Below are positions 37,101-54,737 of a stretch of DNA of 64,000 bases, one piece after another; position 1 is the first letter of the stretch, and each line of letters opens with the position of its first letter. The stretch lies in sequence record MK817115.1; one strand, written 5' to 3'. A program made the position numbers and the translations under genes. A model generated the notes under the pieces. It was not told the DNA's origin and did not search any database. It worked only from the letters and a program-made list of their open reading frames with translations.

Positions 37101-37178
37101 TACACTCCTGCACCCAGTGGGCTAGTTTTTGTCTATGCGTATATAATAGCAAAGGGACTGACCGGAGTCAATCCCTTT
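37101..37178 (-). promoter_or_regulatory. class B unit: UNCG terminator + promoter + CCCANNGGGTGC
   Basis: Hairpin 37151-37178; TTGACT-17-TATTAT; motif 37110-37121. Confidence 0.8.
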
Positions 37179-37192
37179 TTTATTCTTTTTTG

Positions 37193-37393
37193 TTAGATGA
37201 TTCTCCAATCTTCTACGATCATGGTAAGATAACGGACCATCGATTCAAGTGATTCGAATTCCCGATAGTCTGCCGCTCCACCAGCGGTACAAGTACAGCC
37301 GATTAAACCATTTTGCAATTCCTTAATCTGTACATCGATAAGGTTGGCTTTAGCTTCTTTCAGTACTTCAACCAGGGCGATAGCGATAGACAT
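37193..37393 (-). CDS. early hypothetical protein
   Basis: 66 aa behind class A cassette. Confidence 0.8.
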   Translation of the reverse strand: MSIAIALVEVLKEAKANLIDVQIKELQNGLIGCTCTAGGAADYREFESLESMVRYLTMIVEDWRII

Positions 37394-37483
37394 AATGTTT
37401 TACTCCAAACTATTAGCGGGAGAACTATTCCCCCGCTCTATGTAAAACATTATACATTACTGGTTAGTACTGTCAAATAGTTT

Positions 37484-37741
37484 TTATGAAATATCTTCGA
37501 TGTAGTCGGCCCATTTCATTTTTTCAGTACTGTCAATGGCTACCGGATTATTTGGATCAAACCATTCACCATTACCGCAGTACATACCAACGGCTACGGT
37601 TTTATAGCCATCCTGGGCCGTACTCCACGACATTGCACGATAGATATGGCCTTTAACTGGTTGCAGTACTGGTAATGTTTTATGGTCTTCTACGTAGGCC
37701 ATAGCTTGAGGATTTACCCGATATTGTGTGAACTGTTCCAT
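37484..37741 (-). CDS. early hypothetical protein
   Basis: 85 aa with own promoter/RBS. Confidence 0.8.
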   Translation of the reverse strand: MEQFTQYRVNPQAMAYVEDHKTLPVLQPVKGHIYRAMSWSTAQDGYKTVAVGMYCGNGEWFDPNNPVAIDSTEKMKWADYIEDIS

Positions 37742-37817
37742 TATGTTTCCCCTTGTAGTTAGTAAAGTTATTACATCAGTACTATCAAGCTATGTCAATA
37801 GTACTGAAATAAAACTT

Positions 37818-38042
37818 TTAGATTAGATTATTGATGCCTGAAATGGTAGACTCACTTTCTTCTTTCTCCCATTGGCGGTAGTACTTCCACGCTTCATGAT
37901 AGGTGGCGATCAGTTCATCTTTTTGATCCTGAGTACATGCCAGTACTGAATCACTGTAAGCGGTGTTATAGATAGAATCGAATGATTTCTTCTCTTCTGC
38001 CAGGTTAGCTACTTCCCGCATCAGTTCATCAAAGTTAGCCAT
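37818..38042 (-). CDS. early hypothetical protein (acidic)
   Basis: Start trimmed to MANFDE. Confidence 0.8.
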   Translation of the reverse strand: MANFDELMREVANLAEEKKSFDSIYNTAYSDSVLACTQDQKDELIATYHEAWKYYRQWEKEESESTISGINNLI

Positions 38043-38110
38043 TTTAGTACTCCTTATTAGTGGGGGAGGATATCTCCCCCTATGCAAAACATTATACTTT
38101 GTTTTAGTTA

Positions 38111-38374
38111 TTATGCAAGTACTTTTTTCATATAAACATTAAATTCTACACCGCCGTAACCTTCTACGATGATATGTTTTGCGTTATCACGTTTGCACAT
38201 AGTGAAACCGTTGTTGATGTGTTCTGCATTTTCCAGGGCGACATCACCGATAGCGGCACATACGGCACTAATAACAGTATTCCGCAAAGTACTGGTATCA
38301 TTAGCGGTCATAGTAGTTTGCAGTACTACGTTGTCGTATACGTGTGCATTGATAGTGATTTCGATAGTGTTCAT
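38111..38374 (-). CDS. early hypothetical protein
   Basis: 87 aa behind class A cassette. Confidence 0.8.
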   Translation of the reverse strand: MNTIEITINAHVYDNVVLQTTMTANDTSTLRNTVISAVCAAIGDVALENAEHINNGFTMCKRDNAKHIIVEGYGGVEFNVYMKKVLA

Positions 38375-38460
38375 GGTGTATCTCCTGCACAGTCGGGAGA
38401 ACTATTCCCCCGCTCTATGTAAAACATTATACGTTAATCTAACTACAATGCAAGTACTTT

Positions 38461-38652
38461 TTAAATTTTATTTCCGATATAGTCCGGTCTATTCTTTTCG
38501 GTCATACGCTTTGCTAATGTTTGCATATGGCTTATTGCGTTTAATGTGTCTTCCTCCAGGGATGAATCAACATAATCAGGATCATTCTTCACCTTGCAAT
38601 GATTATGATAGCGTAGTACTGCCAGTACTTTTTTAACTTCTTCTACTGTCAT
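38461..38652 (-). CDS. early hypothetical protein
   Basis: 63 aa, ATGA-coupled. Confidence 0.75.
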   Translation of the reverse strand: MTVEEVKKVLAVLRYHNHCKVKNDPDYVDSSLEEDTLNAISHMQTLAKRMTEKNRPDYIGNKI

Positions 38653-38921
38653 AATAAGTACCCCACTTCGTTAGCTTTCAGGTTAGTATCAATCATCAGT
38701 GGATTTTTGTAGTTCACAAAACGATTAGTTTTCTCGATAGCGAATCCCATATAATCCAGCTTACTAACAGTACATTCATTCTTAAAAACTTCTTTCGCTG
38801 CATTGATGGCTGATTCAATTGATAACCGACCATCTAAGTTAATGTTTCCAAATGATCCACCAGCAGAAGTAGGATTACCGTTCATATCTTTAATGATCAT
38901 AGTAGCGGAGTAGCTAGACAT
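38649..38921 (-). CDS. early hypothetical protein
   Basis: 90 aa behind class A cassette. Confidence 0.8.
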   Translation of the reverse strand: MSSYSATMIIKDMNGNPTSAGGSFGNINLDGRLSIESAINAAKEVFKNECTVSKLDYMGFAIEKTNRFVNYKNPLMIDTNLKANEVGYLL

Positions 38922-39005
38922 AATTTTGTTTCCTTTTAGTATCGGGGAGAACTATTCTCCCCTTGATGTAAACTATTATACAGTACTAAGATACTTTGTC
39001 AATAC

Positions 39006-39227
39006 TTAATTACGTTTAAAATGATATGTGCCTTTATCATCCTGTACGCCCCATACTGATTTACCATCAACACCAGTGAAACCGGATTGTAATTCAATAT
39101 GGAAACCATTATTATCAACTACAAAAACTTTTTTATTTTCATCCCGATAACATTGATATTCTGAATCAACATTAAAGGCCGCATCATTCAGAAGATTGGA
39201 AGCGTAAATGCAAGTCATTGTAGTCAT
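39006..39227 (-). CDS. early hypothetical protein
   Basis: Start trimmed to MTTMTC. Confidence 0.8.
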   Translation of the reverse strand: MTTMTCIYASNLLNDAAFNVDSEYQCYRDENKKVFVVDNNGFHIELQSGFTGVDGKSVWGVQDDKGTYHFKRN

Positions 39228-39360
39228 GATTTTATTCCTTATTGCCAGGGAGAACCATTTCCCCCTCTCGATATAAAACATTATACTTGATTCTAAGTAC
39301 AATGCAAGTACTTTTTATCAAATACTTTAAAATAGTTTTCAGTACTGAATACTTATATAA

Positions 39361-39447
39361 TAGATACACTTATGCACCCTGTGGGTCAGTGAGTTATCTC
39401 TCAATGAATATATATTAGCAAAGGGACTGACCGGAGTCAATCCCTTT
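39361..39447 (-). promoter_or_regulatory. class B unit
   Basis: Hairpin 39420-39447; TTGACT-17-TAATAT; motif 39374-39385. Confidence 0.8.
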
Positions 39448-39458
39448 TTTAATCTTTT

Positions 39459-40043
39459 TTATCGTGTTATAGTTACGGCTTTTACATCACGCTTTTTATA
39501 GTACTGATTCCAGATATTGCGGGTTAAACCGTAATCAAGTACTTTAATAAGTCCATTACGATCCTGGCCGATATTCTGTTTTCTGATATCTCTTATCGTT
39601 AGTGTTGATAATGTATCATCGACGTGTTGTAGTGCATCAGCAAAGCGGTGCTGGCGTTCAATGGCATTACGTTTAATATTGTACTTTAATTCGTTGCACG
39701 CGTTAACGTGCTTCACACTGCCTTTACTTGCAGTACTCAACCGATCCATAACGATAAACATATTATCAGGATCGCATAAATGCATATGCACCTTTGCAAA
39801 GTACTGTTTCAATTGAGGGCGGTCATAGTCTAAAAAATTCCATACCTTACATTCAGTTTCATTTTGTTCTACACCCGCATCACAATTGGCGACCTTAATC
39901 ACTAACCGATCATTTAAAGCGAATACGATACGGGAAGAACCCGCCCCGATGATCTCCAGGCCAGCTAACCGACAAGCTGAAAGGATCTCTTTGTTGGTTT
40001 CCATTTCTGACAGTGTACGGATGAATTTAGTATAATTACGCAT
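39459..40043 (-). CDS. Ser/Thr protein kinase-like protein
   Basis: IGAGSSRIV (Gly loop), VIK, alphaC Glu, DIRKQN (catalytic loop), DYG; start trimmed to MRNYTK. Confidence 0.8.
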   Translation of the reverse strand: MRNYTKFIRTLSEMETNKEILSACRLAGLEIIGAGSSRIVFALNDRLVIKVANCDAGVEQNETECKVWNFLDYDRPQLKQYFAKVHMHLCDPDNMFIVMDRLSTASKGSVKHVNACNELKYNIKRNAIERQHRFADALQHVDDTLSTLTIRDIRKQNIGQDRNGLIKVLDYGLTRNIWNQYYKKRDVKAVTITR

Positions 40044-40074
40044 TGCATGTTCTCCTTGAGTTAATGAAACTATC

Positions 40075-40317
40075 TTACAGTACTTTACTATCAATGGCAA
40101 CCACTTTTTTCACACTAACCGCGTGAATCACTTCCTTAGTGTTTTTAGTACTGAATACTTTCGCTGTTCCTTGTTCTACTGCAATGCGATAACGACCGTT
40201 AACATCAACCATATTAATAAAGTCCGGTGTACTAAACCGAGTAGTACGGCATTTCAGTACTGTTAACAATTCCACCAGCGATGTAGTTTCTTTGATACGT
40301 TTTTCTAAAGTAATCAT
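40075..40317 (-). CDS. early hypothetical protein
   Basis: 80 aa with own promoter. Confidence 0.75.
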   Translation of the reverse strand: MITLEKRIKETTSLVELLTVLKCRTTRFSTPDFINMVDVNGRYRIAVEQGTAKVFSTKNTKEVIHAVSVKKVVAIDSKVL

Positions 40318-40375
40318 TTTGTTTTCCCCCGTGTTGGTATGTACATATAGTACTAAAACATTTGAGTACTGTCAA

Positions 40376-40594
40376 TTAGATAATAGAATATTTCTTTAGT
40401 GATAATGCGTCTTCTGTCGGTTGATATTCTACACCGTTCCCGTTATCAACCTTAGTGAGTAAACCTTTATCAATGAGTTTTTTGATGGTACGGTTTCCCT
40501 GTTGAAAACTGGTGAAGTGTGAATCATTACGAAAGGTATAACCGTGCTTCACTGCTTCATCAATAGTTTTCTTTTCGATTTTAGATAATTTCAT
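40376..40594 (-). CDS. early hypothetical protein (possible wHTH)
   Basis: Start trimmed to MKLSK; TIKKLIDKGLLTKV resembles a wHTH recognition helix/wing. Confidence 0.7.
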   Translation of the reverse strand: MKLSKIEKKTIDEAVKHGYTFRNDSHFTSFQQGNRTIKKLIDKGLLTKVDNGNGVEYQPTEDALSLKKYSII

Positions 40595-40650
40595 TTTGTT
40601 TCTCTCTCTGTGTTGGTATAGATACATAATACTAAAACAATTGAGTACTG

Positions 40651-40905
40651 TCAACGTGATATTAGTTTTATTTTTTTATTGTATTGTTGGTGTTCATATA
40701 GATTAATTTTTCCAGTACTCTCAATTACTATTCTATTGTTAGTGTCTACATCGATAACACGTAGTTTCCCGTTGCTTAACTTCCTGGGTAATAGACTACC
40801 ATTAATAAACTCATTAGCAAGCTGTACGGCCTTTGTGATGATTCTCTGTGGTGCTTTATAGTGTACCCGCAAGATATTATCTTTAGATAGTTGTACCTTC
40901 ATCAT
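40651..40905 (-). CDS. hypothetical protein, possibly ParE/RelE-like fold
   Basis: KA...PRKL...IDVDTNNRIV...LYEHQQYN pattern. Confidence 0.4.
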   Translation of the reverse strand: MMKVQLSKDNILRVHYKAPQRIITKAVQLANEFINGSLLPRKLSNGKLRVIDVDTNNRIVIESTGKINLYEHQQYNKKIKLISR

Positions 40906-40920
40906 TTTAGTTTATCCTAT

Positions 40921-40946
40921 AAAAAAAGGCGGGAACTGAACCCGCC
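40921..40946 (-). terminator. rho-independent terminator
   Basis: GGCGGG-7nt-CCCGCC + T7 on minus. Confidence 0.75.
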
Positions 40947-40969
40947 GTGTTGTTAGTACTGCAAAGTTA

Positions 40970-41374
40970 TTAGATAACCTGGCGGCGTTTACTGTATACT
41001 GTTACACGGTTTCCTTTACGGTCATGACGGATCTCTTTCTGGTTACGAATCAGTTCACTTGGACGCTTAAGGTTTGCCAGGTGATCCGCGTGAGTCCATG
41101 CATTTGCGTTAACTGTAACTTCAATATCAGAACCTTTCAAAAAGTCATCTTGAGCGTTCAGTACTTCAGCCAGTTCTTGAGCTTGCTTTAGTTCTGCTTC
41201 AGTAAGTACAGGCTCAGGTGAATTCACAATATCAGAGATCTCTTTGAACTGTACCGCCCAGCGTTGTCCTTTCGGTGCATCTTTGCCCATGTCTTTAAAT
41301 GTTTCACCTTCTTCACGAGCAACGATGCGAGCTTGTTCACGGGTAGCGAAGAATTTAGTAATCATGGTGTACAT
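40970..41374 (-). CDS. early hypothetical protein, paralog of 52987..53253
   Basis: FATREQARI...FKDMG...DRKGNRVTVY. Confidence 0.85.
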   Translation of the reverse strand: MYTMITKFFATREQARIVAREEGETFKDMGKDAPKGQRWAVQFKEISDIVNSPEPVLTEAELKQAQELAEVLNAQDDFLKGSDIEVTVNANAWTHADHLANLKRPSELIRNQKEIRHDRKGNRVTVYSKRRQVI

Positions 41375-41464
41375 CCTATTAGTTAAGTTAATTAGTACTA
41401 CAAGTTAGAGTCTATTATAAAGTACTATCTGGGCAATGTCAAATAGTACTTTAAATGGATTCTA

Positions 41465-41788
41465 TTACATGTCTTTTTTACGTTTTACATCGTAGTAACG
41501 AACTGTAATTTCTTTGTTGATCTCATCCTCAATTCTGTGTAGTACTTTCTCTTTCGGGTTGAAACCTATTACAGTTTCTTTAATGATCTCCAAGCCCGTG
41601 TATTCGCCTTGTGTACCGTAACCGTAAGTAAAGGTTTCATGTCCCAGGTCTTCCCAGCGGTCACCAATCAATGCAGACACGTAGCATGAGTGGTAAGTAT
41701 TGCCGTGGCTATCAGTCCACCGATTAACTTTAATGTCAAAGGAAGTTACAATTTTCATTTCTACTTTCTGGGCAAGGATCATAGTCAT
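41465..41788 (-). CDS. early hypothetical protein, paralog of 47657..48001
   Basis: RW...GNTY...F.YGYG...DVKRKKD. Confidence 0.85.
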   Translation of the reverse strand: MTMILAQKVEMKIVTSFDIKVNRWTDSHGNTYHSCYVSALIGDRWEDLGHETFTYGYGTQGEYTGLEIIKETVIGFNPKEKVLHRIEDEINKEITVRYYDVKRKKDM

Positions 41789-41875
41789 TTTAATTTCTCT
41801 CTTTTTGTTAGGAAGGGAACCATTCCCCTCACTTGATGTAAACTATTATACAGTACTAAGATACTTTGTCAATAC

Positions 41876-42151
41876 TTAAGTATTGTAAATGTCGTGAATA
41901 GTGATAAAGTTTTTACGACCGTAAACATGTAAATCAGTATCAATGTAGTGCTTATCAAGTACATCCTCGACGCTTAAAGCCGTGTCGTGAATATCTTCAT
42001 AGAATTGTGGATCTACAATCTTACTTAAATCATCCGGCGTTAACTTATCATTGAGCCATTGCACCGCCTGGATATCTGCATCACGTTTCCAGTCTTCCAG
42101 GTTAGTAGTCAGTACTTGCTCGATTTCGTTAGCTGTCAGTAGAATCCGCAT
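41876..42151 (-). CDS. early hypothetical protein (acidic)
   Basis: 91 aa behind class A cassette. Confidence 0.8.
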   Translation of the reverse strand: MRILLTANEIEQVLTTNLEDWKRDADIQAVQWLNDKLTPDDLSKIVDPQFYEDIHDTALSVEDVLDKHYIDTDLHVYGRKNFITIHDIYNT

Positions 42152-42240
42152 TTTAATTTCTCTCTTTGTTAGGTGGGGAACTATTCCCCACTTGATGTAA
42201 AATATTATACAGTACTAAAAACTATTGTCAAACTATTTTA

Positions 42241-42441
42241 TCAAATTGTTTCCCATTTCATGTTACCCGCTTTACGCTGTGAAACAGGAATAAACATGTT
42301 ATTAATGTTACTAATATAACCGACCTGTAAGTCACGCTGTGAACCATACGCCCGACTTGCTGCATTTTTAGCACCGCGTTCTGATTTATAAACGCCGCTG
42401 GATACTGTAAAGCCTACTACACCGAAAGTAAAATGTTTCAT
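42241..42441 (-). CDS. early hypothetical protein
   Basis: 66 aa with promoter and GAGG RBS. Confidence 0.8.
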   Translation of the reverse strand: MKHFTFGVVGFTVSSGVYKSERGAKNAASRAYGSQRDLQVGYISNINNMFIPVSQRKAGNMKWETI

Positions 42442-42492
42442 TTTGTATTCCTCTTTGTGGTTGATGTAAGTATTATACTCGTTTAATTTCTA

Positions 42493-42643
42493 TTGTCAAA
42501 CTATTTTATCAGGGGAGGTTTTCGTATGTCTTACTCCTGGACTACTTAACGGGGTTACTTATTTCGTTCCCCGTCCTGATGTAAAACATTATACTTGATT
42601 CTAAGTACAATGCAAGTACTTTTTAAAAATAGTTTTCAGTACT
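42493..42643 (-). repeat. ORF-less ~150-bp module (copy 1), candidate sRNA
   Basis: Near-identical to 52299-52451. Confidence 0.75.
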
Positions 42644-42670
42644 TGATAGTACTAGCCACCAGCATATAAT

Positions 42671-42751
42671 AGATACATTTATGCACCCTGTGGGTTAGAT
42701 TGTTTCTATGCATATATAATAGCAAAGGGACTGACCGGAGTCAATCCCTTT
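42671..42751 (-). promoter_or_regulatory. class B unit
   Basis: Hairpin 42724-42751; TTGACT-17-TATTAT; motif 42683-42694. Confidence 0.8.
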
Positions 42752-42762
42752 TTTAAATCTTT

Positions 42763-42912
42763 TTAAACTTGTTTTGGGTTGCGATATGTGATAGCGTTCG
42801 GGTACATTTGTTTAATGTTATTCCATGCCTGGTTAACATTGTAACCACTTGATCGAATCAGTTGGTTACTTCCTACGCCCTGAAACACTACTTCGAATAA
42901 GAATTCTTTCAT
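42763..42912 (-). CDS. small early protein (49 aa)
   Basis: Hand-translated MKEFLFEVVFQG...; ATGA-coupled. Confidence 0.65.
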   Translation of the reverse strand: MKEFLFEVVFQGVGSNQLIRSSGYNVNQAWNNIKQMYPNAITYRNPKQV

Positions 42913-43079
42913 GCTGCAATCCCCTCTGATTTACCTTTACGCCAGGCGTTAGCCAGTTCATTACGTTGCCATACATCCAATGCAATGTATAGTTTAGCAG
43001 TATCCCCTTTAGGGTATTCGCCAGTAGTGCCTAACCGATAAAACAGATCTTTCAGTACTGATAATTCTACTTGGATCAT
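42909..43079 (-). CDS. small early protein (56 aa)
   Basis: Hand-translated MIQVELSVLKDL...; AGGAG RBS. Confidence 0.65.
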   Translation of the reverse strand: MIQVELSVLKDLFYRLGTTGEYPKGDTAKLYIALDVWQRNELANAWRKGKSEGIAA

Positions 43080-43185
43080 TGTATTACTCCTGATTGTGTT
43101 AGTACTTCTACGATGGCATGAATGATCATAAGTACAGCTAACACAACAATCATCGGATTCATTTGCATAAGCTGTACTCCTTCTA

Positions 43186-43398
43186 TTAATCTTTCAGCCA
43201 ATGATCTTGAATGAATTTTTCACAGAATCCCTGTTTCATAGATTCTAACAGGCGTTCACGGTGAGCGGCGGCATATTGCTCAGTACTATGCGTTACGCCA
43301 GGTTGATAACGTGAAACACCGTCCGGTCCGATATATTGAACATCCCACGGTTTTTCGTTAGTATCAGACCATTTACGAACGATTAGTTGACCTTGCAT
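43186..43398 (-). CDS. early hypothetical protein
   Basis: 70 aa behind class A cassette. Confidence 0.8.
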   Translation of the reverse strand: MQGQLIVRKWSDTNEKPWDVQYIGPDGVSRYQPGVTHSTEQYAAAHRERLLESMKQGFCEKFIQDHWLKD

Positions 43399-43483
43399 GT
43401 TTCTTTCCTCTTAGTGGGGAGAATCATTTCTCCCCTTCATGTAAACTATTATACAGTACTATAATCTATTGTCCAGTACTTTT

Positions 43484-43678
43484 TTACAGTTTATGAATCA
43501 ATTCTTTATCTAAGCGATAGCGTACATTATTAATGGTAACAGCATTATTTTTAATGCTACGCTGTACTGGCCCACCAGCAATAACAAACGTTGCTTTATT
43601 ACCCCGAACAATGATAGCACTACCAGGATTGCCAAAATCATCTTGTACTAAAATACTTGATAAGTTTTCCATTTTCAT
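43484..43678 (-). CDS. early hypothetical protein
   Basis: 64 aa behind class A cassette. Confidence 0.8.
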   Translation of the reverse strand: MKMENLSSILVQDDFGNPGSAIIVRGNKATFVIAGGPVQRSIKNNAVTINNVRYRLDKELIHKL

Positions 43679-43750
43679 TTCCTCTTAGTAGGGGAAGACG
43701 TTTCCCCTTGATGTAAGTACTATAACAGTACTGGAAACTAAATGCAAGTA

Positions 43751-44107
43751 CTACGATAAAATCATGATAGGATATTCACTATCGATCAGTACTTCAAATC
43801 CAAAACTTTCATACCATTCTTTAAGATTAAAGGCGTTATCTTCTCCCGTATCGCATTCTAAAATGATACAATCTGAATCATCGGCGGCATCAATAAAGGC
43901 GTTCATCAATTCCGTACCTTCACCATTACCCCGACTAGCAGGATCAACATAAAGAGAATCAATAAACGCTACACGGTCATAATCAAGATCCGGTGCAATG
44001 ATTCCACGTTTAACAAACCAGTACTGCAATTGTGCTACTTTGCCCTGTACTTGATAGCCAGTGATCTCGCCATTGTCAGTAGTACGCGTGGTATGTTGTA
44101 TTCCCAT
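43751..44107 (-). CDS. GNAT family N-acetyltransferase
   Basis: IDSLYVDPASRGNGEGTELM (motif A), WYESFGF. Confidence 0.88.
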   Translation of the reverse strand: MGIQHTTRTTDNGEITGYQVQGKVAQLQYWFVKRGIIAPDLDYDRVAFIDSLYVDPASRGNGEGTELMNAFIDAADDSDCIILECDTGEDNAFNLKEWYESFGFEVLIDSEYPIMILS

Positions 44108-44170
44108 GATTTCTATCCTCAGTTAAGATATAAAATATTATACACTATCTTTCAGTACTGTCAATACTTT

Positions 44171-44625: not shown

Positions 44626-44698
44626 TGTTAAACGTCCTGTAACGCATTCTAACGAGATAAACGGTTTAGTACTGGCATTGTATAGGGTAATGGATTAA

Positions 44699-44724: not shown

Positions 44725-44730
44725 ATAATC

Positions 44731-47255: not shown

Positions 47256-47306
47256 GGTATAATCCCCAATATAAGCGGCCTAAATCGACCGCTAACGATG
47301 TTTTGA

Positions 47307-47576: not shown

Positions 47577-47656
47577 TATACTATCTTCTTAAGTTAATTT
47601 AATTTCTTTCCCCTATGCAGACACTATATCAAAGTATCTGCATAAAGTAAAGCTAA

Positions 47657-48001: not shown

Positions 48002-48082
48002 TTTAATTTCCTCTTAGTTGTCTTGATAAAATCTATTATGCCAGTACTATCAAACTATGTCAATAGTACTGTGATAATATTT

Positions 48083-48226
48083 TTACTTACTTTTTGCTTT
48101 CTTTGCTGCTTCCACCTGGTCGGCCCATTCTTTACCCCATACTTGTAAATTATAATGGTACTGGCAAAGTGCAACGCCCCGCTTTAAACCAGTAATAGAT
48201 TTTTTACCACATTGACAAGTTTTCAT
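48083..48226 (-). CDS. small putative Zn-binding protein (47 aa)
   Basis: Hand-translated MKTCQCG...LCQYHY; behind class A cassette. Confidence 0.6.
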   Translation of the reverse strand: MKTCQCGKKSITGLKRGVALCQYHYNLQVWGKEWADQVEAAKKAKSK

Positions 48227-48312
48227 ATTAGTTTCCTCATTATCAGGGAGAACCATTTCTCCCCTTGATGTAATGTATTATACTTTATCTGATTTACTTT
48301 GCAAGTACTTTT

Positions 48313-48540
48313 TTAATTTAATTCATCCAGGCAAAGGATACGCTCAACGCCCAAATCAGTTAAACTAATCGACGGCACTTGATAGGTTTCAATGTATGCT
48401 ACACTTGCCCACTGACCGAACTCATTAACGGCCCATTTATCCATTGCAAAATGCAATTCCGCACCTTTCTTATTAGTAATTACAGCAACAGTAGAAGAAT
48501 TGCCAGTAGTACCAGTTACGCGAGTGATTACGATAGCCAT
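48313..48540 (-). CDS. early hypothetical protein
   Basis: Start trimmed to MAIVIT. Confidence 0.8.
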   Translation of the reverse strand: MAIVITRVTGTTGNSSTVAVITNKKGAELHFAMDKWAVNEFGQWASVAYIETYQVPSISLTDLGVERILCLDELN

Positions 48541-48777
48541 TGTTTTAATTCCTTTGATTTGGAAGGAGAACCGTTTCCCCCTCTCGATGTAAAACATTAT
48601 ACGCTAATCTCTTAATCGTGCAAGTACTTTTTATTACTTTTTGCAAAATACTTTAAACGCACTCAATCGCGTTCTTACAGCCTTAACGCCACCAGCTAGG
48701 GCAATGCATCAGATAATCAGTTTAATGCGTTAGAATCGATTCTAGGCGGTGCTGGTGGCCTGGTAAACGTTAAACAC

Positions 48778-48803
48778 AAAAAAGCCCACTTATGCAGTGG
48801 GCT
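48778..48803 (-). terminator. terminator, AGCCCAC...GTGGGCT type
   Basis: 8-bp stem + T6 on minus. Confidence 0.75.
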
Positions 48804-48824
48804 AGTGATTCAGTACTTTAATTG

Positions 48825-49307
48825 TTATGCTTCCACTTTGCGATGAGCTTCGATCCATTCCTCGCGAGTCATACCGCTGGAGTTAATCGCATCCAGTACT
48901 ACCGCAATGCAGTTACCACGCACCGGAATCAGATATTCTTCCCCGTTGTCCAGTACTACCGCTACACGTTTTTGAATCCATTTTTTAGGCTTAGATTCCG
49001 GCTTATCTTCCCCATACTTAACCGCCAGGGCTTTTTGTGCCATCTCTGTAACTACTTCCAGATCCAATCCAACTACTGCCGCCTGAATACTTTCAATTGT
49101 TGCTTGTAGTTCTGCTTCACGGGCCGCCTTTGCCGCTTCAATTTCTGCCGCTTTATTTGCTTGTAGTTCTTTCGCAGTACTATAAGCGATGTTAAAATTA
49201 TTGCGTACCGCTTTCATGGTATCGTTATCCAGATCAGCCAGGATCTCTGCCGCGACGTTAGTTTCATTTGCTACCAGTGCTTTGATGAATGATTTTACAT
49301 TAGCCAT
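48825..49307 (-). CDS. H-NS/MvaT-like protein (coiled coil + C-terminal domain)
   Basis: Ala/Glu-rich helical N-half; C-term LDNGEEYLIPVRGNCIAVVLDAINSSGMTREEWI aligns by eye with H-NS [35 protein letters not shown]. Confidence 0.5.
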   Translation of the reverse strand: MANVKSFIKALVANETNVAAEILADLDNDTMKAVRNNFNIAYSTAKELQANKAAEIEAAKAAREAELQATIESIQAAVVGLDLEVVTEMAQKALAVKYGEDKPESKPKKWIQKRVAVVLDNGEEYLIPVRGNCIAVVLDAINSSGMTREEWIEAHRKVEA

Positions 49308-49510
49308 TTTATAAATCCTCAATTAAAGTTTAGTTTACGTTGGTTAGTGTATCAAAGTTTTCTCGACGTGTCCAGTTTTTCGTTCGACTTACTGGCGGTC
49401 TACTTAGTGCTCCCCGTCTTGATGTAATATATTCTACGCCTTTTTGCGGTAATGTCAACTATTTTTTAAAACTATTTTCAAAGTATCTCAGTACTACGAT
49501 ACTACAAAAA

Positions 49511-49534
49511 CAAAAAAAGCCCACCAGGTGGGCT
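49511..49534 (-). terminator. terminator, AGCCCAC...GTGGGCT type
   Basis: 7-bp stem + T7 on minus. Confidence 0.75.
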
Positions 49535-49540
49535 ATGTAC

Positions 49541-49771
49541 TTAATCAGTAATTAAAACATTAAACACTTTATCATTTAACGTTATGGGTGTACTGCTACC
49601 AGGCTTGAGATCAGTTAGTACACCTGCAATAGCTTTTTCATTGGCGACCTTTCCAGTGTCCAACAGTACTACAGTACTGATAAGATTAACGCTCGTTTCA
49701 ATATCATAATGCACGGCGTTAAGTAGTTGTGTAGTACTGCTTTCGTTAAGTAAAACAATTCGCTTAGTCAT
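49541..49771 (-). CDS. early hypothetical protein
   Basis: 76 aa. Confidence 0.75.
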   Translation of the reverse strand: MTKRIVLLNESSTTQLLNAVHYDIETSVNLISTVVLLDTGKVANEKAIAGVLTDLKPGSSTPITLNDKVFNVLITD

Positions 49772-49792
49772 GATGTTACCCCGTAGTATCTA

Positions 49793-50092
49793 TCAACGGC
49801 AATTAATAACGCCAGTATGAGTTACTTTCTCAGTATCCATAACAGTGACCGAACCGCGTTTAGTACTTGCATCGTAATAAATTGTCGTGCTACCGTTTTC
49901 GTCTTCTTCATGGAACGGGCCGTTTTTAAATGCTTCCGGCTGGATCTCTAAATCCTTTAAAACAATCTCGCCAGTACTTTCATCGGTCATTGCAACAGTG
50001 CACTGAATGAATTTTTCACTACTTACATCTAATGACGCATTAACAGCGAAAGAGGAAACAGATAAAGCCAGGGCGATGATTGCAATTTTCAT
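49793..50092 (-). CDS. putative secreted/periplasmic protein
   Basis: Signal peptide MKIAIIALALSVSSFAVNA. Confidence 0.75.
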   Translation of the reverse strand: MKIAIIALALSVSSFAVNASLDVSSEKFIQCTVAMTDESTGEIVLKDLEIQPEAFKNGPFHEEDENGSTTIYYDASTKRGSVTVMDTEKVTHTGVINCR

Positions 50093-50177
50093 TTGATTAT
50101 CCTTAGTTACCAGGGGGAACCGCTCCCCCCTTGCGATGTAAAATATTATACAGTACTAAAAACTAATTGCAAGTACT

Positions 50178-50414
50178 TTATGATTTTTTATAAAACATTT
50201 CGGCAGTGATATTTTTACCCGTTGGTTGTACTTTATCCAGAATTTTTTGATGTCCAGGGCGACCAAATGAATAAGATCCGTAAACCGTAAACCAGTAGTT
50301 ACCCTCAGTGTTTACATGTACAGCACAATAGGGAACGCCCCGCGATTCATCACTAGTAAAGTGTGATACCGTACCCGTTACATTCGCAGACGTTGATTTG
50401 ATTTGTTCGACCAT
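50178..50414 (-). CDS. early hypothetical protein
   Basis: 78 aa behind class A cassette. Confidence 0.8.
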   Translation of the reverse strand: MVEQIKSTSANVTGTVSHFTSDESRGVPYCAVHVNTEGNYWFTVYGSYSFGRPGHQKILDKVQPTGKNITAEMFYKKS

Positions 50415-50522
50415 TTTCTTATTCCTTAGTTACCAGGGGAACCGCTCCCCCTATGCAAAACATTATACGCGTTTAAAAACTAATAGCAAGTATTTTAATA
50501 AAAAGTATTTGGAAAATAATTG

Positions 50523-50591
50523 TTGACAAGTGCATCCAGTACTGGCATAATTACTACATCAAGACGAAACAGTCACTAACCCACCGGGTGC
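50523..50591 (+). promoter_or_regulatory. class B unit, plus strand, no ORF
   Basis: TTGACA-17-CATAAT; CCCACCGGGTGC 50580-50591. Confidence 0.75.
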
Positions 50592-50621
50592 CGAGATCCG
50601 TCTATTAAATGATTCAGTACT

Positions 50622-50650
50622 AAAAAAAGAAAGGGGATCAATTGATCCCC
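50622..50650 (-). terminator. rho-independent terminator (possibly bidirectional)
   Basis: GGGGATCAATTGATCCCC, strong U-tract on minus. Confidence 0.75.
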
Positions 50651-50656
50651 TCGTTG

Positions 50657-50878
50657 TTATTTTGTAAGGTATAAACAGAAGTCACCTTTATTTGCTACGC
50701 CGCCAGTGTAACGCGAGGAATAGTTAGAAACGTCCTGGACTTCTGCTATTACCAGGGTATCATCATTCAATTCGTCGCAGAAGCAAACGGCTGGATCTTG
50801 TACGCCGATATTGTCGGCATGTTCCCGCATAGATTTAACCAGTGCTTCAAGTTGGGAAAGAGTAGTGATATTAGCCAT
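50657..50878 (-). CDS. early hypothetical protein
   Basis: Start trimmed to MANITT. Confidence 0.8.
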   Translation of the reverse strand: MANITTLSQLEALVKSMREHADNIGVQDPAVCFCDELNDDTLVIAEVQDVSNYSSRYTGGVANKGDFCLYLTK

Positions 50879-50961
50879 TTTATTTTCCTCATTACCAGGG
50901 AGAACCATTTCTCCCCTTGATGTAAACTATTATACAGTACTAAAAACTAATTGCAAGTACT

Positions 50962-51243
50962 TTAACTGTAAGATCCGCAACGGTCGCAGTAGTGCCCCTC
51001 GTCATCGTCAACGAATTGACCAACGAAATTATCTACTTTCGCTTTCAGGTTATTATAATCGTTTTCTACTTCATTTAAACGCTTCTGGTAGTATTCCAGT
51101 GCTTTAAGATATGCCGCATCAGCAGTTTTCTCCTGCATAGCTAAATTCATGCCACGCGTTTCATCGTACAGCCAAAAACCATCGGTGCACTGGCTAATAG
51201 ATAATGACTTGCTTAGTACTGTATAGTTAATTACTTTACTCAT
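50962..51243 (-). CDS. early hypothetical protein
   Basis: GFWLYDETRGMNLAM + coiled coil; start trimmed to MSKVIN. Confidence 0.8.
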   Translation of the reverse strand: MSKVINYTVLSKSLSISQCTDGFWLYDETRGMNLAMQEKTADAAYLKALEYYQKRLNEVENDYNNLKAKVDNFVGQFVDDDEGHYCDRCGSYS

Positions 51244-51301
51244 TAGATAAACCCTCAATAAAGGCGGGAACCATTCCCCGCCATTGTTACAGTACTGAAT
51301 A

Positions 51302-51541
51302 TTACATTCCAACCATTGCAGCACGGATCGCAGTAGTGCTATACTTAAAGCCGTCCGGCGTTGTAGTAGTACCGTTGGCTTTTAATCTGCGGTACATGCA
51401 TTCCGCTGCAATATCTTTAGTTCTACTTTGTGCGATACAACTTTGTGCAAGCCGATACAATGACTCACCGTTATTAATCCATAAGGAAACATTCCAATGA
51501 GTTTTGTTTTTGTGCCCGTTGTAAGTTTTAGTACTAGCCAT
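51302..51541 (-). CDS. early hypothetical protein, paralog of 53339..53578
   Basis: GHKNKTHWNVSLWINN...TPDGFKYSTTAIRAAMVGM. Confidence 0.85.
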   Translation of the reverse strand: MASTKTYNGHKNKTHWNVSLWINNGESLYRLAQSCIAQSRTKDIAAECMYRRLKANGTTTTPDGFKYSTTAIRAAMVGM

Positions 51542-51633
51542 TTTTTTTAATCCTCGTTTGAGCGGGGAACCACTCCCCGCCTCGATATAAAGTATTATAC
51601 GCTTTTAAACTTAGTTTGCAAGTACTTTTTAAA

Positions 51634-52245
51634 TTAATATTCGATTGATTCTACTACGCCATCAATAACATTGAATTGATATTCGTTACCCTCAATCAGT
51701 GCTGTAATGTTTTCAGTAGTGAATTGATCCTCATATGCATTCTCTAAATCACGGTACAACTTGCGGGATAATTCACGAATAGTTTCAGTGAGTAGTTCCT
51801 CAAGCTCATTAACTAACGTTTCTTGTTTTGCGGTTAAATCAGTGTAAGCCGATTCAATGTACCCGCTTACAGTGTTTTCATGCGAGTAGTGGGAGTGAGA
51901 ACGCTTTACACTCATCGCCAAATCATCTTCATTCAGCAGGTGACGGATTGAGCGATACTTAGTTAATGCTCTTACCTTGCGTAAAAACTTCACTGCGTCA
52001 ACGTGGTCAGTACTGATTGATGCACCGTCACCCTGGGACCAAAAACCACTGAATTGTATTTCAGCGTCATTAATGCCATATTCCGGCAATACTGTTTCTT
52101 TATAGTGTTCAATTTCACTTTCAGAAAAATAATCGTCGTTTGAGTTTTTTTCACGTTCCCGAACCAGTTCGATAGCTGACGTTTTTTGTTCTGCGTTCAA
52201 TTCAGAAAAATCCATAACATAAGTAGTAGTAGTGATAGTTTTCAT
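51634..52245 (-). CDS. conserved protein of the family annotated 'antitoxin of toxin-antitoxin stability system' (function unverified)
   Basis: FSGFWSQGDGAS motif; N-term T.Y...EL...K..A; C-term LYR.LE..Y......I..NEY.F. Confidence 0.55.
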   Translation of the reverse strand: MKTITTTTYVMDFSELNAEQKTSAIELVREREKNSNDDYFSESEIEHYKETVLPEYGINDAEIQFSGFWSQGDGASISTDHVDAVKFLRKVRALTKYRSIRHLLNEDDLAMSVKRSHSHYSHENTVSGYIESAYTDLTAKQETLVNELEELLTETIRELSRKLYRDLENAYEDQFTTENITALIEGNEYQFNVIDGVVESIEY

Positions 52246-52298
52246 TTTGTAACCCTCATTCAGTAGTTTATGTAAGTATTATACGCTTTTAAAAACAA

Positions 52299-52451
52299 TT
52301 GTCAAACTATTTTATCAGGGGAGTTTTTCGTGTGCCTTACTCCTGGGCTACTTAACGGGAAGTTACTTATTTCGTTCCCCGTCCTGATGTAAAACATTAT
52401 ACGCCTTTAAACATAGTTTGCAAGTACTTTTTAAAAATAGTTTTCAGTACT
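52299..52451 (-). repeat. ORF-less ~150-bp module (copy 2), candidate sRNA
   Basis: Near-identical to 42493-42643. Confidence 0.75.
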
Positions 52452-52467
52452 GAATAGTAAAAAGGTA

Positions 52468-52640
52468 TTGACAGCACTATCCAGTACTGGTATAATATAC
52501 CCCATGACAACAGCTAACCCACCGGGTGCACAATTGTAACTGTACTAAACTACTTTTTCTATAGATACACTCCCGCACCCTATGGGCTACGGCTTATCTG
52601 CCAATGAATACATTATGCCAGTACTGACAAAATAAGTCAA
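52468..52640. promoter_or_regulatory. convergent pair of class B promoters
   Basis: Plus TTGACA-17-TATAAT with motif 52518-52529; minus TTGACT-17-CATAAT with motif 52575-52586. Confidence 0.8.
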
Positions 52641-52670
52641 TACCGGCAATTGTAAAGATTTGTAAACTAC

Positions 52671-52901
52671 TTATACTGCAATCGCGTCCAGGCTATAATA
52701 ATAATAAGTGCCGTATTGGTGTACTTTATTACCTTTTATTTCAGTACTGAATGAATCCGAACGATTGGCATATGATGTTAATTTATAGTACTTTACTTTA
52801 CTAATACGTTGCCATACACCGCAGATCCGCTGTAAGTAAGTAGTTTTATTTGTGGTAGTATCTTTTACGGCTTTCAATTCGATCATATACATAGTGGTCA
52901 T
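52671..52901 (-). CDS. early hypothetical protein
   Basis: 76 aa behind class A cassette. Confidence 0.8.
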   Translation of the reverse strand: MTTMYMIELKAVKDTTTNKTTYLQRICGVWQRISKVKYYKLTSYANRSDSFSTEIKGNKVHQYGTYYYYSLDAIAV

Positions 52902-52986
52902 TTTATTACTCCTTGCTTTAGTGGGGAACTATTCCCCACCTGATATAAAGTATTATACGCGTTTAAACTTAGTTTGCAAGTACTTT

Positions 52987-53253
52987 TTATTCAAGTACTG
53001 CGATCTTTTTAATACGGTACACGGTCACGCGGTTGCCCTTTCGGTCGAGCTTTATTTCTACCACTCGACGCGATACACTATCAGGACTTTTCAACGCCGC
53101 TAACCAGTACTGTAATGATCTGGCGGTACTACGCTTTACAATGGCCCAACGTTTACCACGTTCCGATTGTACGCCCATATCTTTAAACGTTGCCCCGTCC
53201 TGGCGTGCGGCGATCCGAGCTTGTTCACGCGTCGCAAAATACTTAATATTCAT
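52987..53253 (-). CDS. early hypothetical protein, paralog of 40970..41374
   Basis: YFATREQARI...DRKGNRVTVY; start trimmed to MNIKYF. Confidence 0.85.
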   Translation of the reverse strand: MNIKYFATREQARIAARQDGATFKDMGVQSERGKRWAIVKRSTARSLQYWLAALKSPDSVSRRVVEIKLDRKGNRVTVYRIKKIAVLE

Positions 53254-53338
53254 GCTGTTGCCCTTATCGTTGGTGTATGAATAAAACACTATTATAAAGT
53301 ACTATCGCAAAAAATGATAGTACTTTAAATAAATTCTA

Positions 53339-53578
53339 TTACATTCCAACCATTGCAGCACGGATCGCAGTAGTGCTATATTTGAATCCGTCCGGTGTTT
53401 TATCTTGTCCAGTCTGTTCTAAAAATAACATCATATGACGGGCCGCATCATTACGATTAGTATTGGCGGCAATAAAGTCCTGGGCCAACCGGTATAATGA
53501 TTCATCGTTATTAATCCAAAGGCTTACATTCCAATGAGTTTTGTTTTTGTGACCTAAGAACATTTTTGATTTAGCCAT
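53339..53578 (-). CDS. early hypothetical protein, paralog of 51302..51541
   Basis: GHKNKTHWNVSLWINNDE; start trimmed to MAKSKM. Confidence 0.85.
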   Translation of the reverse strand: MAKSKMFLGHKNKTHWNVSLWINNDESLYRLAQDFIAANTNRNDAARHMMLFLEQTGQDKTPDGFKYSTTAIRAAMVGM

Positions 53579-53671
53579 TTTTTTAATCCTCTTATATAGT
53601 GGGGAACTATTCCCCACCTGATGTAAAACATTATACGCTTTTAAACATAGTTTGCAAGTACTTTATTAAAC

Positions 53672-54034
53672 TTATTCGTAAATTTTGCCACTGTCAGCCC
53701 ATACCAGGAAACGAGGCATATTATCCCATGCATCTTGTTTTAAATTTAAACCGTGTAATACTTCTGTACTTTCCATTCCTGGTACTGGTTTACTATACAC
53801 CGCAAATAGTTCACCCATATACTGATAAGCCATCGTTAAATCACTGGCGATCATCTTATGGATCATCGCATCAAGCATCACGGTAGCGGCGTATTGTTCA
53901 CGCTTAAGCGGTAACATTGCAATAAGTTCCCGATAAGCTGAAATGTGAATTTTTACCGTTTCAGCCGGAAGACCTTTCATCTCTTCACGGAAGTTAACCA
54001 GGTTAGCAATAATTTTATTGATTTGAGTCGCCAT
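53672..54034 (-). CDS. first gene of the early region, hypothetical
   Basis: Behind class A cassette; start MATQIN (or MKT at 54043). Confidence 0.8.
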   Translation of the reverse strand: MATQINKIIANLVNFREEMKGLPAETVKIHISAYRELIAMLPLKREQYAATVMLDAMIHKMIASDLTMAYQYMGELFAVYSKPVPGMESTEVLHGLNLKQDAWDNMPRFLVWADSGKIYE

Positions 54035-54397
54035 CGTTTTCATCTCTCTTACAGTGTAGCGGGAAGTGTTCCCGCTCTCGATGTAAAACATTATACGCTT
54101 TTAAACATAGTTTGCAAGTACTTTCTACATGTACTTTTAAAATAGTTTTCTTTCTATATAGGAGTACTATTATTCAGTACTGCAACCATCCAGGGGAACT
54201 ATCTTTCTATATAGTAGTACTATTATTCAGTACTGAATCAATCAACCAAATCACTACTACACCCCGTAAAACGGCCTCAGACGCATTCTAACGCATTAAT
54301 ACACCCAAGCTATACATTTGCACCATTCCAATCATTCCAGGGCTTTACGGGCCGTTTAAACGCGTTAAATTATTTTCAATTATTTTGTTTTTAGGTA

Positions 54398-54580
54398 TTG
54401 ACTCAGTACAGAAAAAGCGTATAATTACTATATAGACGCGAGAAAGCGGAAACCCCAGAGGGTGCGGAATTACGCCCAAAATTCAAGATATAAAAAAAGG
54501 ATACACTCCCGCACCCTAGCAGGTAAACGCACTTTCTCAGTACTGAAATATAGTACCATAGTCCGGCCCAGGATAGCAAG
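54398..54580. promoter_or_regulatory. second convergent pair of class B promoters
   Basis: Plus TTGACT-16-TATAAT with CCCAGAGGGTGC 54454-54465; minus TTGCTA-18-TACTAT with degenerate motif ~54511-54522. Confidence 0.65.
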
Positions 54581-54612
54581 CAAATTAATTAAAACTTTTT
54601 TCATCCAGGGTA

Positions 54613-54680
54613 TTGCTTTATTTTTCCAGTACTGTATAATAGTTCCATCAAGTCGAGAAAGACTCAAGCCCACCGGGTGC
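54613..54680 (+). promoter_or_regulatory. class B unit, plus strand
   Basis: TTGCTT-16-TATAAT; CCCACCGGGTGC 54669-54680. Confidence 0.7.
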
Positions 54681-54737
54681 ATAGTTACGCCCAAAATTCA
54701 GTACTAGATTATTTTTTAAAAATATTCATCCAGGCGG

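Follow-up and report, generated by a model that had tools for sequence, protein, structure and literature searches.

The terminal repeat of enterobacterial Rak2-like jumbo phages carries, and is the only place to carry, a family of promoter-plus-leader cassettes in which a strong sigma70 promoter is followed by a structured RNA leader that is under RNA-level selection. We describe this family from the final 64 kb of the genome of Escherichia phage vB_EcoM_phAPEC6 (MK817115; 100% identity), a 352.6-kb Asteriusvirus in the Rak2-like group of jumbo phages; the window is this whole 64,000-nucleotide stretch, and window position equals record position minus 288,598. Ten units occur in it. Each consists of a promoter and a conserved leader of about 45–50 nt, and the unit is repeated 8–12 times per terminal repeat across four genera of Rak2-like jumbo phages. 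The leader contains a small, nearly invariant hairpin, P2, whose 3' strand can instead pair with a downstream box to form an alternative helix, P3. We tentatively read the element as one that controls transcript elongation close to the promoter.

A motif locked to strong promoters in the terminal repeat

The motif CCCANNGGGTGC has nine exact matches in the window against 0.02 expected, and none of 100 shuffled sequences reached nine (0/100). A preliminary description of this DNA had listed nine copies, and all nine matched exactly at the positions and on the strands that it gave (Table 1; units are named here by motif position and strand). The degenerate copy that it placed at 54511(-) reads CTGCTAGGGTGC and is recovered by a covariance model at E=0.09. 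Its further claim of a co-oriented sigma70 promoter 21–28 nt before each copy was borne out for all ten: the distances from the end of the -10 to the motif are 21, 26, 21, 26, 28, 21, 25, 28, 27, and 28 nt, the -35 is TTGAC(A/T) or the weaker TTGCT(T/A), the spacer is 16–18 bp, and the -10 variants are TATTAT, TATAAT, CATAAT, TAATAT, and TACTAT. All copies fall in intergenic gaps of the phAPEC6 annotation and, as had been described, none leads directly into a ribosome-binding site (RBS) and open reading frame (ORF); a second promoter, a terminator, or a head-on partner comes instead. The described extensions are also present. Minus-strand copies carry (A/G)GTGTATC, and the plus copies 54454 and 54669 carry TACGCCCAAAA, with further CTACGYCCAAAATCC copies at 55006 and 55032; the “AGTGTATC” extension belongs to a 3' box, N-Y-R-U-C-Y, that all copies have at fixed spacing. 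Variation had been thought to be confined to the 3-nt centre, which is true of the good phAPEC6 copies and ceases to be true once relatives are included, since these show CCU...AGG, CCU...GGG, 4-nt loops, and GGGTG(G/T).

Scanning the whole genome showed that the motif is confined to this block, a point that the preliminary description had raised as a question; we identify the block as the equivalent of the direct terminal repeat (DTR). The plain pattern gave one further match in the rest of the phAPEC6 genome, at record 245680; we rejected it as a tenth copy, as it is an unrelated, palindromic, terminator-like GCACCCAACGGGTGC. On both strands of the genome the covariance model found exactly ten copies and nothing else better than E=0.38. 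Promoters alone do not explain this confinement, because 85 other promoters that agree with the consensus at 11 or more of its 12 positions are found beyond the repeat. The orientation of the motif is locked to that of its promoter in 71/71 copies, and the element was never found without a promoter.

The boundaries of the phAPEC6 repeat are putative and were placed by homology to relatives. The ends of the 21,525-bp annotated DTR of the close relative vB_Ec-M-J align to window positions ~55,770 and ~35,690, and the enclosed stretch has a GC content of 0.36–0.41 against 0.30–0.35 outside it. A DTR of 20,993 bp has been confirmed by restriction digests in fEgEco12 (PMC13070987). By BLAST the unit has 8–12 places in records that contain both repeat copies versus 4–5 in collapsed records. 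The annotated repeats of fENko-Kae01, CBB, and Muenster contain every copy found in these phages, and the element also falls under an annotated repeat in vB_Ec-M-J.

The stretch with the units is a run of small leftward genes of unassigned function. Of the 50 annotated proteins in the phAPEC6 repeat equivalent, few are common to several genera; the proteins of the repeat that are conserved across genera include gp503c (window 40651-40905(-)), which has a ParE-like toxin domain (E=3e-10) and is conserved in all four genera, gp513c (44171-44428(-)), a DksA/TraR zinc-finger protein encoded in the repeat (E=1e-11), and gp500c (39459-40043(-)), which has a weak protein-kinase-like match. This gene content fits an early, host-takeover region of the phage. 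In the distant relative PA5oct the terminal repeat is an early region for which the host polymerase is needed (PMC7318152), and in CBB a concentration of RpoD-type promoters in the early region has already been noted, without the leader element (PMC5259590).

Distribution among Rak2-like phages

With a 106-nt unit as query, 95 phage records matched. Among the matches listed, all full-length ones are Rak2-like jumbo phages of Enterobacterales, with Escherichia, Salmonella, Klebsiella, Cronobacter, Pectobacterium, Erwinia, Yersinia, and Serratia as hosts, and annotated matches carry the label “terminal repeat”. Our comparative set comprised 66 units (56–60 distinct) from phAPEC6, vB_Ec-M-J, fENko-Kae01, CBB, Muenster, RaK2, and two metagenomic contigs. 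The covariance model gave 71 matches in nine sequence sources and a further nine in Yersinia phage fHe-Yen9-03.

We rejected a host origin for the element: there were no matches in 5,426 E. coli genomes, and among 185,579 bacterial species genomes there were 27 scattered single matches, fewer than expected by chance and none in Enterobacterales. The 14-base pattern, scanned against IMG/VR, gave mostly single chance matches, with multi-copy occurrence only in Rak2-like contigs. Rfam had no match at gathering thresholds in the window; in the 36–56 kb part there were four chance-level matches (E 0.1–0.6), none overlapping the units. We did not find the element described in the literature, nor a paper giving its sequence, which agrees with the proposal that this is an undescribed regulatory family. 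The terminal repeat of PA5oct gave no covariance-model match, and we rejected a link to the PA5oct non-coding RNAs, whose sequences are unrelated.

An unrelated GC-rich viral contig of IMG/VR (3300042332_000769, 4444-4742) has seven CCCACTGGGTGC copies within 300 bp, arranged as DNA iterons. Their likeness to the motif is a coincidence of sequence.

Structure of the leader

Transcription is predicted to start at an A ~7 nt past the -10, and the leader opens with A(U). In 41 of the 56 distinct units it carries a first hairpin, P1, of 3–5 bp with a purine-rich loop of 6–8 nt (AGAUAA, AGAACAA, GAGAAA, or GCGAAA, for example). There are about 20 P1 stem sequences, including GGC/GCC, UGAG/CUCA, GGAG/CUCC, AGCA/UGCU, and ACCG/CGGU, and their fold z-scores range from -2 to -5. 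In the remaining 15 units, 12–13 unpaired A/C-rich nucleotides take the place of P1. All four P1 pairs change on both sides in the model alignment. The covariation score of the whole structure is 0.285, compared with 0.139 in shuffled alignments (0/500 reach the observed value) and at most 0.096 with slid partners, where the alignment, being fitted to the covariance model, favours structure and the slid controls preserve sequence relatedness. The covariance model was needed because MAFFT with RNAalifold recovered only P2, as P1 shifts register between copies.

A YUA linker leads to P2, which reads R-CCC, a loop of 3–4 nt, and GGG-U. Position 0 (A or G) pairs with the invariant U10 and CCC with GGG, the three C:G pairs being almost invariant. 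P2 is paired in 99% of cells against 4–60% with the partner columns slid. Its outer pair is A-U in 38 distinct copies and G.U in 24. Further variants of P2 are two with U.G and two with a double change from C:G to U:A. Most genera have the loop A-Y-N; in other genera it is UAUA, UCAA, or UUUA. We take the hairpin to be read as RNA, or single-stranded on the transcribed sense, because a G.U pair keeps RNA pairing and breaks DNA symmetry. The centre of the motif had been suggested to be either a mini-hairpin or a dyad operator, and these wobble variants uphold the first and count against an operator in double-stranded DNA.

P2 is followed by G11 (100%), C12 (G/U in six diverged copies), five purine-rich bases, and U18 (93%). 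The 3' box comes next as (G/C/A)19-Y20-R21-U22-C23-Y24, with G19 in 60% of copies and Y20 and R21 in 100%, and conservation fades by about position 31. The spacing from P2 to the box shows no indel in 60/60 distinct copies, while the upstream part is full of them.

The 3' box is complementary to GGGUGC when wobble is allowed, forming P3, which is paired in 90.5% of cells against 32–67% with slid partners. All changes in the box preserve P3, with U/C opposite G and A/G opposite U; this pattern is one of compatibility rather than covariation, because GGGUGC does not vary. In the six diverged copies with G/U at position 12, position 19 still pairs in five (C-G twice, A-U once, G.U twice). P2 and P3 are mutually exclusive because both use GGG. 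The predicted fold is P2 in most units and P3 in 37110, 54669, 54511, and one copy with a P2 weakened to CCU/AGG. At 54511(-) a run of seven U comes after P3, and the two together score as an intrinsic terminator. P3 with a U-run occurs in 6/66 units, this one and five copies from relatives, and P2 is never followed by a U-run. The preliminary description missed four features: the upstream hairpin P1, the 3' box and the pairing that it can form instead, the promoter in tandem, and the setting in the terminal repeat.

Other readings of the conserved leader were tried and rejected. An outer helix that would join the start of the leader to its 3' box (AGAUA/UAUCU and AGACG/CGUCU in single folds) has an own-pair energy of -3.36, equal to the cross-unit value of -3.24 (p=0.27). 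A translated mini-ORF (M-Y-L-stop) with GGGUG as Shine-Dalgarno sequence lacks its start codon in 40% of copies, with NUG at positions 17–19 in 36/60 and AUC, GUC, UUA, and others in the rest, and ORF length is not conserved. A CsrA site fails as the GGA in the spacer is not conserved. A mimic of a tRNA or of a CRISPR repeat was dismissed: no tRNA or Rfam match was found, and on inspection only 3–4 bp resemble an acceptor stem.

Orientation and context of the units

Six units (37110, 39374, 42683, 46017, 52575, and 54511) run in the sense of the genes. The first four of them have the -35 inside a 12-bp terminator-type hairpin, AAAGGGATTGACTCCGGTCAGTCCCTTT, the same sequence being present at 39447. 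In the gene-sense units a second promoter, typically TTGCAA-16-TATAAT, follows 40–60 nt on with its own leader hairpin, RBS, and gene, and the gene starts 147–240 nt past the motif. Antisense units face the end of the upstream operon. The layout of the antisense unit 50580(+), with a terminator nearby, recurs in fENko-Kae01, Muenster, RaK2, L014, and L035. The units 54454(+) and 54669(+) point to the mapped end, ~1.1–1.3 kb away. In Muenster an outward unit at 18-29(-) ends 17 nt from the PhageTerm-reported terminus, and a hairpin formed by the palindrome CAGTACTG replaces its P1.

Two pairs are head-on, 52518(+)/52575(-) and 54454(+)/54511(-), with motif starts exactly 57 nt apart in both; in the first, the predicted start sites are 102 bp apart. 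Pectobacterium phage CBB has three head-on pairs with the identical 57-nt spacing. In Klebsiella-type relatives the spacing is 68–75 nt, and a perfect Fur-box core, AATGATAATCATT, lies exactly midway (fENko-Kae01 1043-1055 and 7312-7324; L014 2825 and 8083; L035 915 and 961). This core hints at possible iron-dependent host control of the Klebsiella-type pairs, and it is absent from the head-on pairs of phAPEC6.

Proposed elongation control and competing explanations

Our leading interpretation, held tentatively, is a promoter-proximal elongation-control element that would act by pausing, attenuation, or antitermination. A very strong host sigma70 promoter would start the first transcripts from the phage terminal repeat. 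In the emerging RNA, P2 would fold and be recognised by RNA polymerase or a polymerase-bound protein. P2 would compete with P3, which may be a true terminator in some copies, and the regulated step would come ~35–45 nt after the start, where the polymerase would pause, stop, or continue in a modified form. What the analysis establishes is the family itself, its confinement to the repeat, its conservation, the RNA-type pairing, and the alternative helix; where transcripts begin, whether polymerase pauses, what protein reads P2, and what follows are inferred.

We favour elongation control because the element is bound to the start site, the spacing between P2 and the box is rigid, the sequence partly resembles a pause signal, and P2 overlaps a helix that in some copies is a terminator. 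The strict position beside the start site suggests an event at the start of elongation, and the invariance of P2 suggests a specific reader, whether polymerase or protein. With position 20 taken as -1, U10 falls at -11, G11 at -10, U18 at -3, G19 at -2, Y20 at -1, and R21 at +1, and the invariant pyrimidine/purine step comes 10 nt after the 3' base of the hairpin. The pause consensus reportedly consists of G at -10, a pyrimidine(-1)/G(+1) step, and a hairpin whose 3' base is 10–12 nt from the paused end.

Several considerations weigh against this interpretation. The pause pattern is only partial, as +1 is G in 33% of copies and -11 is U, and P3 pairing could give the Y/R pattern without any pause. 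P2, at 4 bp, is small for a pause hairpin; moreover, pause hairpins normally covary and P2 is invariant, which points to a sequence-specific partner. The antisense copies run into terminators or a partner, where a change in elongation has no obvious use. No candidate reader protein was found: the conserved DksA/TraR, kinase-like, and ParE-like proteins of the repeat are unlinked to the element, and we identified no N-like, Q-like, or NusG-like partner, a comparison of 10 repeat-encoded proteins with Pfam giving no match to an N-like arginine-rich protein. The literature yielded no transcript, pause, or binding data for these phages.

An extended form of elongation control, which we consider unlikely, is a self-contained RNA module that reprograms the host polymerase on the first-entering DNA. 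P2 would bind the polymerase or an Enterobacterales-specific host factor and give long-lived paused or terminator-resistant complexes, and the 57-nt head-on pairs would bring polymerases face to face as barriers close to the genome end. In this way, genome entry could be gated in steps, the end protected, or modules insulated from one another.

A less probable explanation than elongation control, and the best account of the antisense ORF-less copies, is that the element forms the 5' domain of abundant early non-coding RNAs that titrate a host or phage protein or serve as small regulatory RNAs. With some ten strong promoters, present twice because of the repeat, short P2-containing RNAs would fill the cell within minutes; gene-sense copies would yield this RNA too, either joined to mRNA leaders or released from them by cleavage. 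The unit at 50580(+) has the form of a complete small-RNA gene, with promoter, structured 5' part, and a terminator ~40 nt past the motif, and the antisense copies of the five relatives named above share this layout. The invariant P2 beside a freely covarying P1 has the look of a protein-binding site, and a target specific to the host would be in keeping with the restriction to phages of Enterobacterales. Two abundant non-coding RNAs arise from the terminal repeat of PA5oct (PMC7318152), but these are unrelated in sequence. The terminators belong to neighbouring operons and are bidirectional, so that the short length of the transcripts may be incidental, and more than half of the copies are gene-sense and followed by a promoter rather than a terminator. 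A family of short RNAs, one of the possibilities raised at the outset, describes 50580(+) and the antisense copies of relatives, which have their own promoter, no ORF, and a terminator within ~45–60 nt, as expected of a small-RNA gene (terminator within about 50–300 nt), and does not describe the gene-sense copies. Nor would a free RNA need the start-site position or the fixed P2-to-box spacing.

It is unlikely that the element is a 5' stability or processing determinant, giving protection from 5'-end-dependent decay or a cleavage site for a host or phage ribonuclease in the GGAG-like spacer. In about three quarters of copies P1 does begin close to the predicted 5' end, 2–5 nt from it, and the spacer after GGGUGC is purine-rich and often GGAG, which is the cut site of the T4 RegB nuclease in early mRNAs. 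However, about a quarter of copies have 14–15 unpaired nucleotides at the 5' end and would gain no protection, the spacer can also be AUAAG, CGAGA, or ACAAU, so GGAG is not conserved, and both the invariant P2 and the antisense ORF-less copies would go unexplained.

We think it more improbable still that the motif is an operator in double-stranded DNA, at which a phage or host protein bound to CCCNNNGGG just past the start would shut off or block early promoters. The motif has a short dyad, whose symmetry the CCT...AGG variant preserves, it lies at +15 to +35, which would allow a roadblock, and the unrelated viral contig described above has CCCACTGGGTGC as clustered DNA iterons. Against this, G stands opposite the invariant T in 24/65 copies and CCT...GGG occurs in two, changes that keep RNA pairing and break DNA symmetry. 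The conserved UGC flank and the 3' box are asymmetric, the promoter-locked orientation holds in every one of the 71 copies, and the adjoining P1 covaries as RNA.

Two further explanations have very little probability in our view. The units could be mobile cassettes of the promoter–terminator type known as PeSL (promoter-early stem-loop), which reshuffle gene modules through recombination, with the motif kept by homogenisation of copies and without function. Four gene-sense units have the PeSL architecture of terminator hairpin and early promoter (PMC4122927), and the region is rich in small genes of unassigned function and differs by indels between close relatives. PeSLs, however, end in an RBS and start codon, which the units do not, and P1 and the spacer vary widely within one genome while the four genera share motif and 3' box, which argues for selection on the motif rather than homogenisation.

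The other, proposed in the preliminary description as polymerase-driven DNA-entry stations, is that the promoters pull or anchor incoming DNA, as host RNA polymerase does for T7, with the head-on pairs as stops. All units lie in the terminal repeat, the gene-sense units point inward from the mapped end every 2–4.5 kb, and the 57-nt pairs lie 1.3 and 3.2 kb from the end in phAPEC6 and 1.0 and 3.8 kb in CBB. Yet four units point the wrong way, and a promoter suffices for pulling, which leaves the conserved RNA element without a role. The resemblance of RTCTRTW in the 3' box to the T7 class II signal ATCTGTT is treated as a coincidence, because that signal is read by a T7-type single-subunit polymerase and none is annotated in phAPEC6.

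Relation to known systems

The closest architectural parallel is the PeSL cassette of T4-like phages (Arbiol 2010, PMC2839356; Comeau 2014, PMC4122927), which likewise combines a terminator-type stem-loop (A3G3...C3T3) with a near-consensus sigma70 early promoter and is repeated among small variable genes. A stem-loop at the promoter is present in four units (37178-37151, 42751-42724, 46090-46063, and 39447) and not in the other six, and none has a Shine-Dalgarno sequence and start codon at its 3' end, a structured leader and second promoter standing there instead. The units also differ from PeSLs in having the -35 inside the stem, a conserved structured leader, both orientations with head-on pairs, and confinement to the terminal repeat.

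As a signal, the element resembles lambda nut (boxA/boxB), HK022 put, ops, and the LoaP leader hairpin in being short, orientation-locked, and situated in the first tens of transcript nucleotides; nut, put, and LoaP, though not ops, are small nascent-RNA hairpins, as we propose here. The purine-rich P1 loops GAGAAA and GCGAAA recall boxB, the two adjacent hairpins recall put, and the 12-nt size of the motif recalls ops. Membership of nut or ops found no support. The boxA (CGCUCUUA / UGCUCUUU) core GCTCTT/TGCTCT is in 0/66 units, and P1 is like boxB in loop composition alone; the core of RfaH ops GGCGGTAGnnTG is in 1/66 (chance level), and the motif differs in sequence. Two adjacent hairpins are found in about three quarters of units and are far smaller than those of put, which act on polymerase without protein factors. 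The element may still act in a nut/put-like or pause-type manner.

The element is also like a his-type pause in having a hairpin 10–11 nt upstream of a Y/R step with G at -10, and like RAT-type antiterminator/terminator overlaps in that P2 overlaps the 5' strand of P3. It departs from both in its invariant 4-bp hairpin, its partial pause consensus, and the lack of a U-run after most P3 helices. The SPO1 terminal redundancy and the T5 first-step-transfer region consist of small early genes with many strong host-type promoters. The repeats of SPO1, T5, and PA5oct resemble the one described here in this respect and have no sequence element in common with it. The element lies outside the nut, ops, and Rfam families and the strict PeSLs, and is a new variation on phage early promoter cassettes and leader RNA signals.

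Rak2-like jumbo phages (~350 kb) are common phage-therapy candidates. On their terminal repeat the element sets apart, as a class of their own, some ten promoters that are among the strongest there. At least four genera have kept it while the surrounding genes turned over, and so it offers a handle on the earliest regulatory step in the form of a 45-nt RNA open to mutation, pull-down, and in vitro assay. The covariance model locates terminal-repeat early regions in unannotated jumbo-phage contigs. The element might possibly serve as a tool, as a small polymerase-directed or protein-titrating RNA, and were it only a stability hairpin it would still be a new RNA motif family with covariation support.

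Coordinates and neighbouring sequence features

Table 1. Units of the promoter-plus-leader family in the window, with predicted transcription start sites (TSS), covariance-model scores in bits, and the DTR equivalent
Feature	Position	Strand	Orientation and score	Promoter and TSS	P1	Motif	3' box	Downstream features and remarks
DTR equivalent	35690..55770	.						by homology to the annotated DTR of vB_Ec-M-J; contains all ten units
Unit 1	37091..37178	-	gene-sense; 33	hairpin 37178-37151 enclosing -35 TTGACT 37171-37166; -10 TATTAT 37148-37143; TSS ~37136	none	37121-37110	GTATCC 37103-37098	promoter 37030-37002, gp492c ATG 36948
Unit 2	39355..39447	-	gene-sense; 54.2	hairpin and -35 39440-39435; -10 TAATAT; TSS ~39405	UGAG/CUCA	39385-39374	GTATCT	TTGCAT-TATAAT promoter, leader hairpin, RBS, gp499c
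Unit 3	42664..42751	-	gene-sense; 39.6	hairpin 42751-42724 with -35; -10 TATTAT; TSS ~42709	no stable P1	42694-42683	GTATCT	two more promoters, then gp507c
Unit 4	45998..46090	-	gene-sense; 50.2	hairpin 46090-46063 with -35; -10 TATTAT; TSS ~46048	UGAG/CUCA	46028-46017	GTATCT	promoter 45961-45934, then gp518c
Unit 5	50523..50660	+	antisense to genes; 51.1	-35 TTGACA 50523; -10 CATAAT; TSS ~50558	GAC/GUC	50580-50591	CCGTCT	predicted ORF-less RNA of ~100 nt; bidirectional terminator 50631-50652; back-to-back with leftward gp531c promoter 50489-50462
Unit 6	52468..52548	+	antisense; 23.1	12/12 consensus match; TSS ~52503	none	52518-52529	GTAACT	head-on partner of unit 7
Unit 7	52556..52640	-	gene-sense; 46.5	-35 TTGACT 52640; -10 CATAAT; TSS ~52605	GGC/GCC	52586-52575	GTATCT	head-on partner of unit 6
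Unit 8	54398..54484	+	towards genome end; 42.5	TSS ~54432	CGC/GCG	54454-54465	ACGCCC, then AAAATTC	head-on partner of unit 9
Unit 9	54492..54579	-	degenerate gene-sense copy; 16.6 (E=0.09)	weak, TTGCTA-18-TACTAT		54511; CCC lost (CTGCTAGGGTGC)	GUAUCC, pairing with GGGUGC	seven U follow, terminator-like; head-on partner of unit 8
Unit 10	54613..54699	+	towards genome end; 45.5	TSS ~54647	AGUC/GACU	54669-54680	ACGCCC, then AAAATTC	promoter 54738-54766, then 8-bp iteron array 54868-55019

The palindrome CAGTACTG occurs 58 times in the window against 0.8 expected and 198 times in the phAPEC6 genome, and AGTACT occurs 918 times in the genome versus ~120 by a rough estimate from base composition. 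CAGTACTG lies in the spacer or extended -10 of five of the unit promoters (for example at 50537, 52482, 52619, and 54627) and, in most units, also 12–30 nt past the 3' box. The palindrome probably represents a protein site or promoter element of its own, spread over the whole genome.

The ORF-less stretch at 54.1–55.8 kb, which adjoins the mapped genome end, contains about 19 iterons of (C)RTCTAGC with an 8-bp period at 54868-55019 and, near this array, three CTACGYCCAAAATCC copies, at 54682, 55006, and 55032. The outward promoters 54613-54640 and 54738-54766 transcribe into the array, a candidate site of packaging or replication.

A second conserved ORF-less leader of ~75 nt, opening with CAGGACGGGGAACGAAATAAGTAAC, lies at 42554-42578(-) and 52362-52386(-), just downstream of the units 42683 and 52575. 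It has a TTGCA(T/A)-TATAAT promoter, is followed by a further TTGACA-16-TATAAT promoter, and may be another structured RNA. Promoters of a different class, TTGCAA-16-TATAAT (class A), carry a 5' hairpin (GAGAGGGGAAAC..GTTTCCCCTGG) that is conserved and immediately precedes the RBS; they are found at 45900-45960, 39230-39330, and ~15 other sites in the 36–54 kb part of the window, and almost all small genes of the repeat have one.

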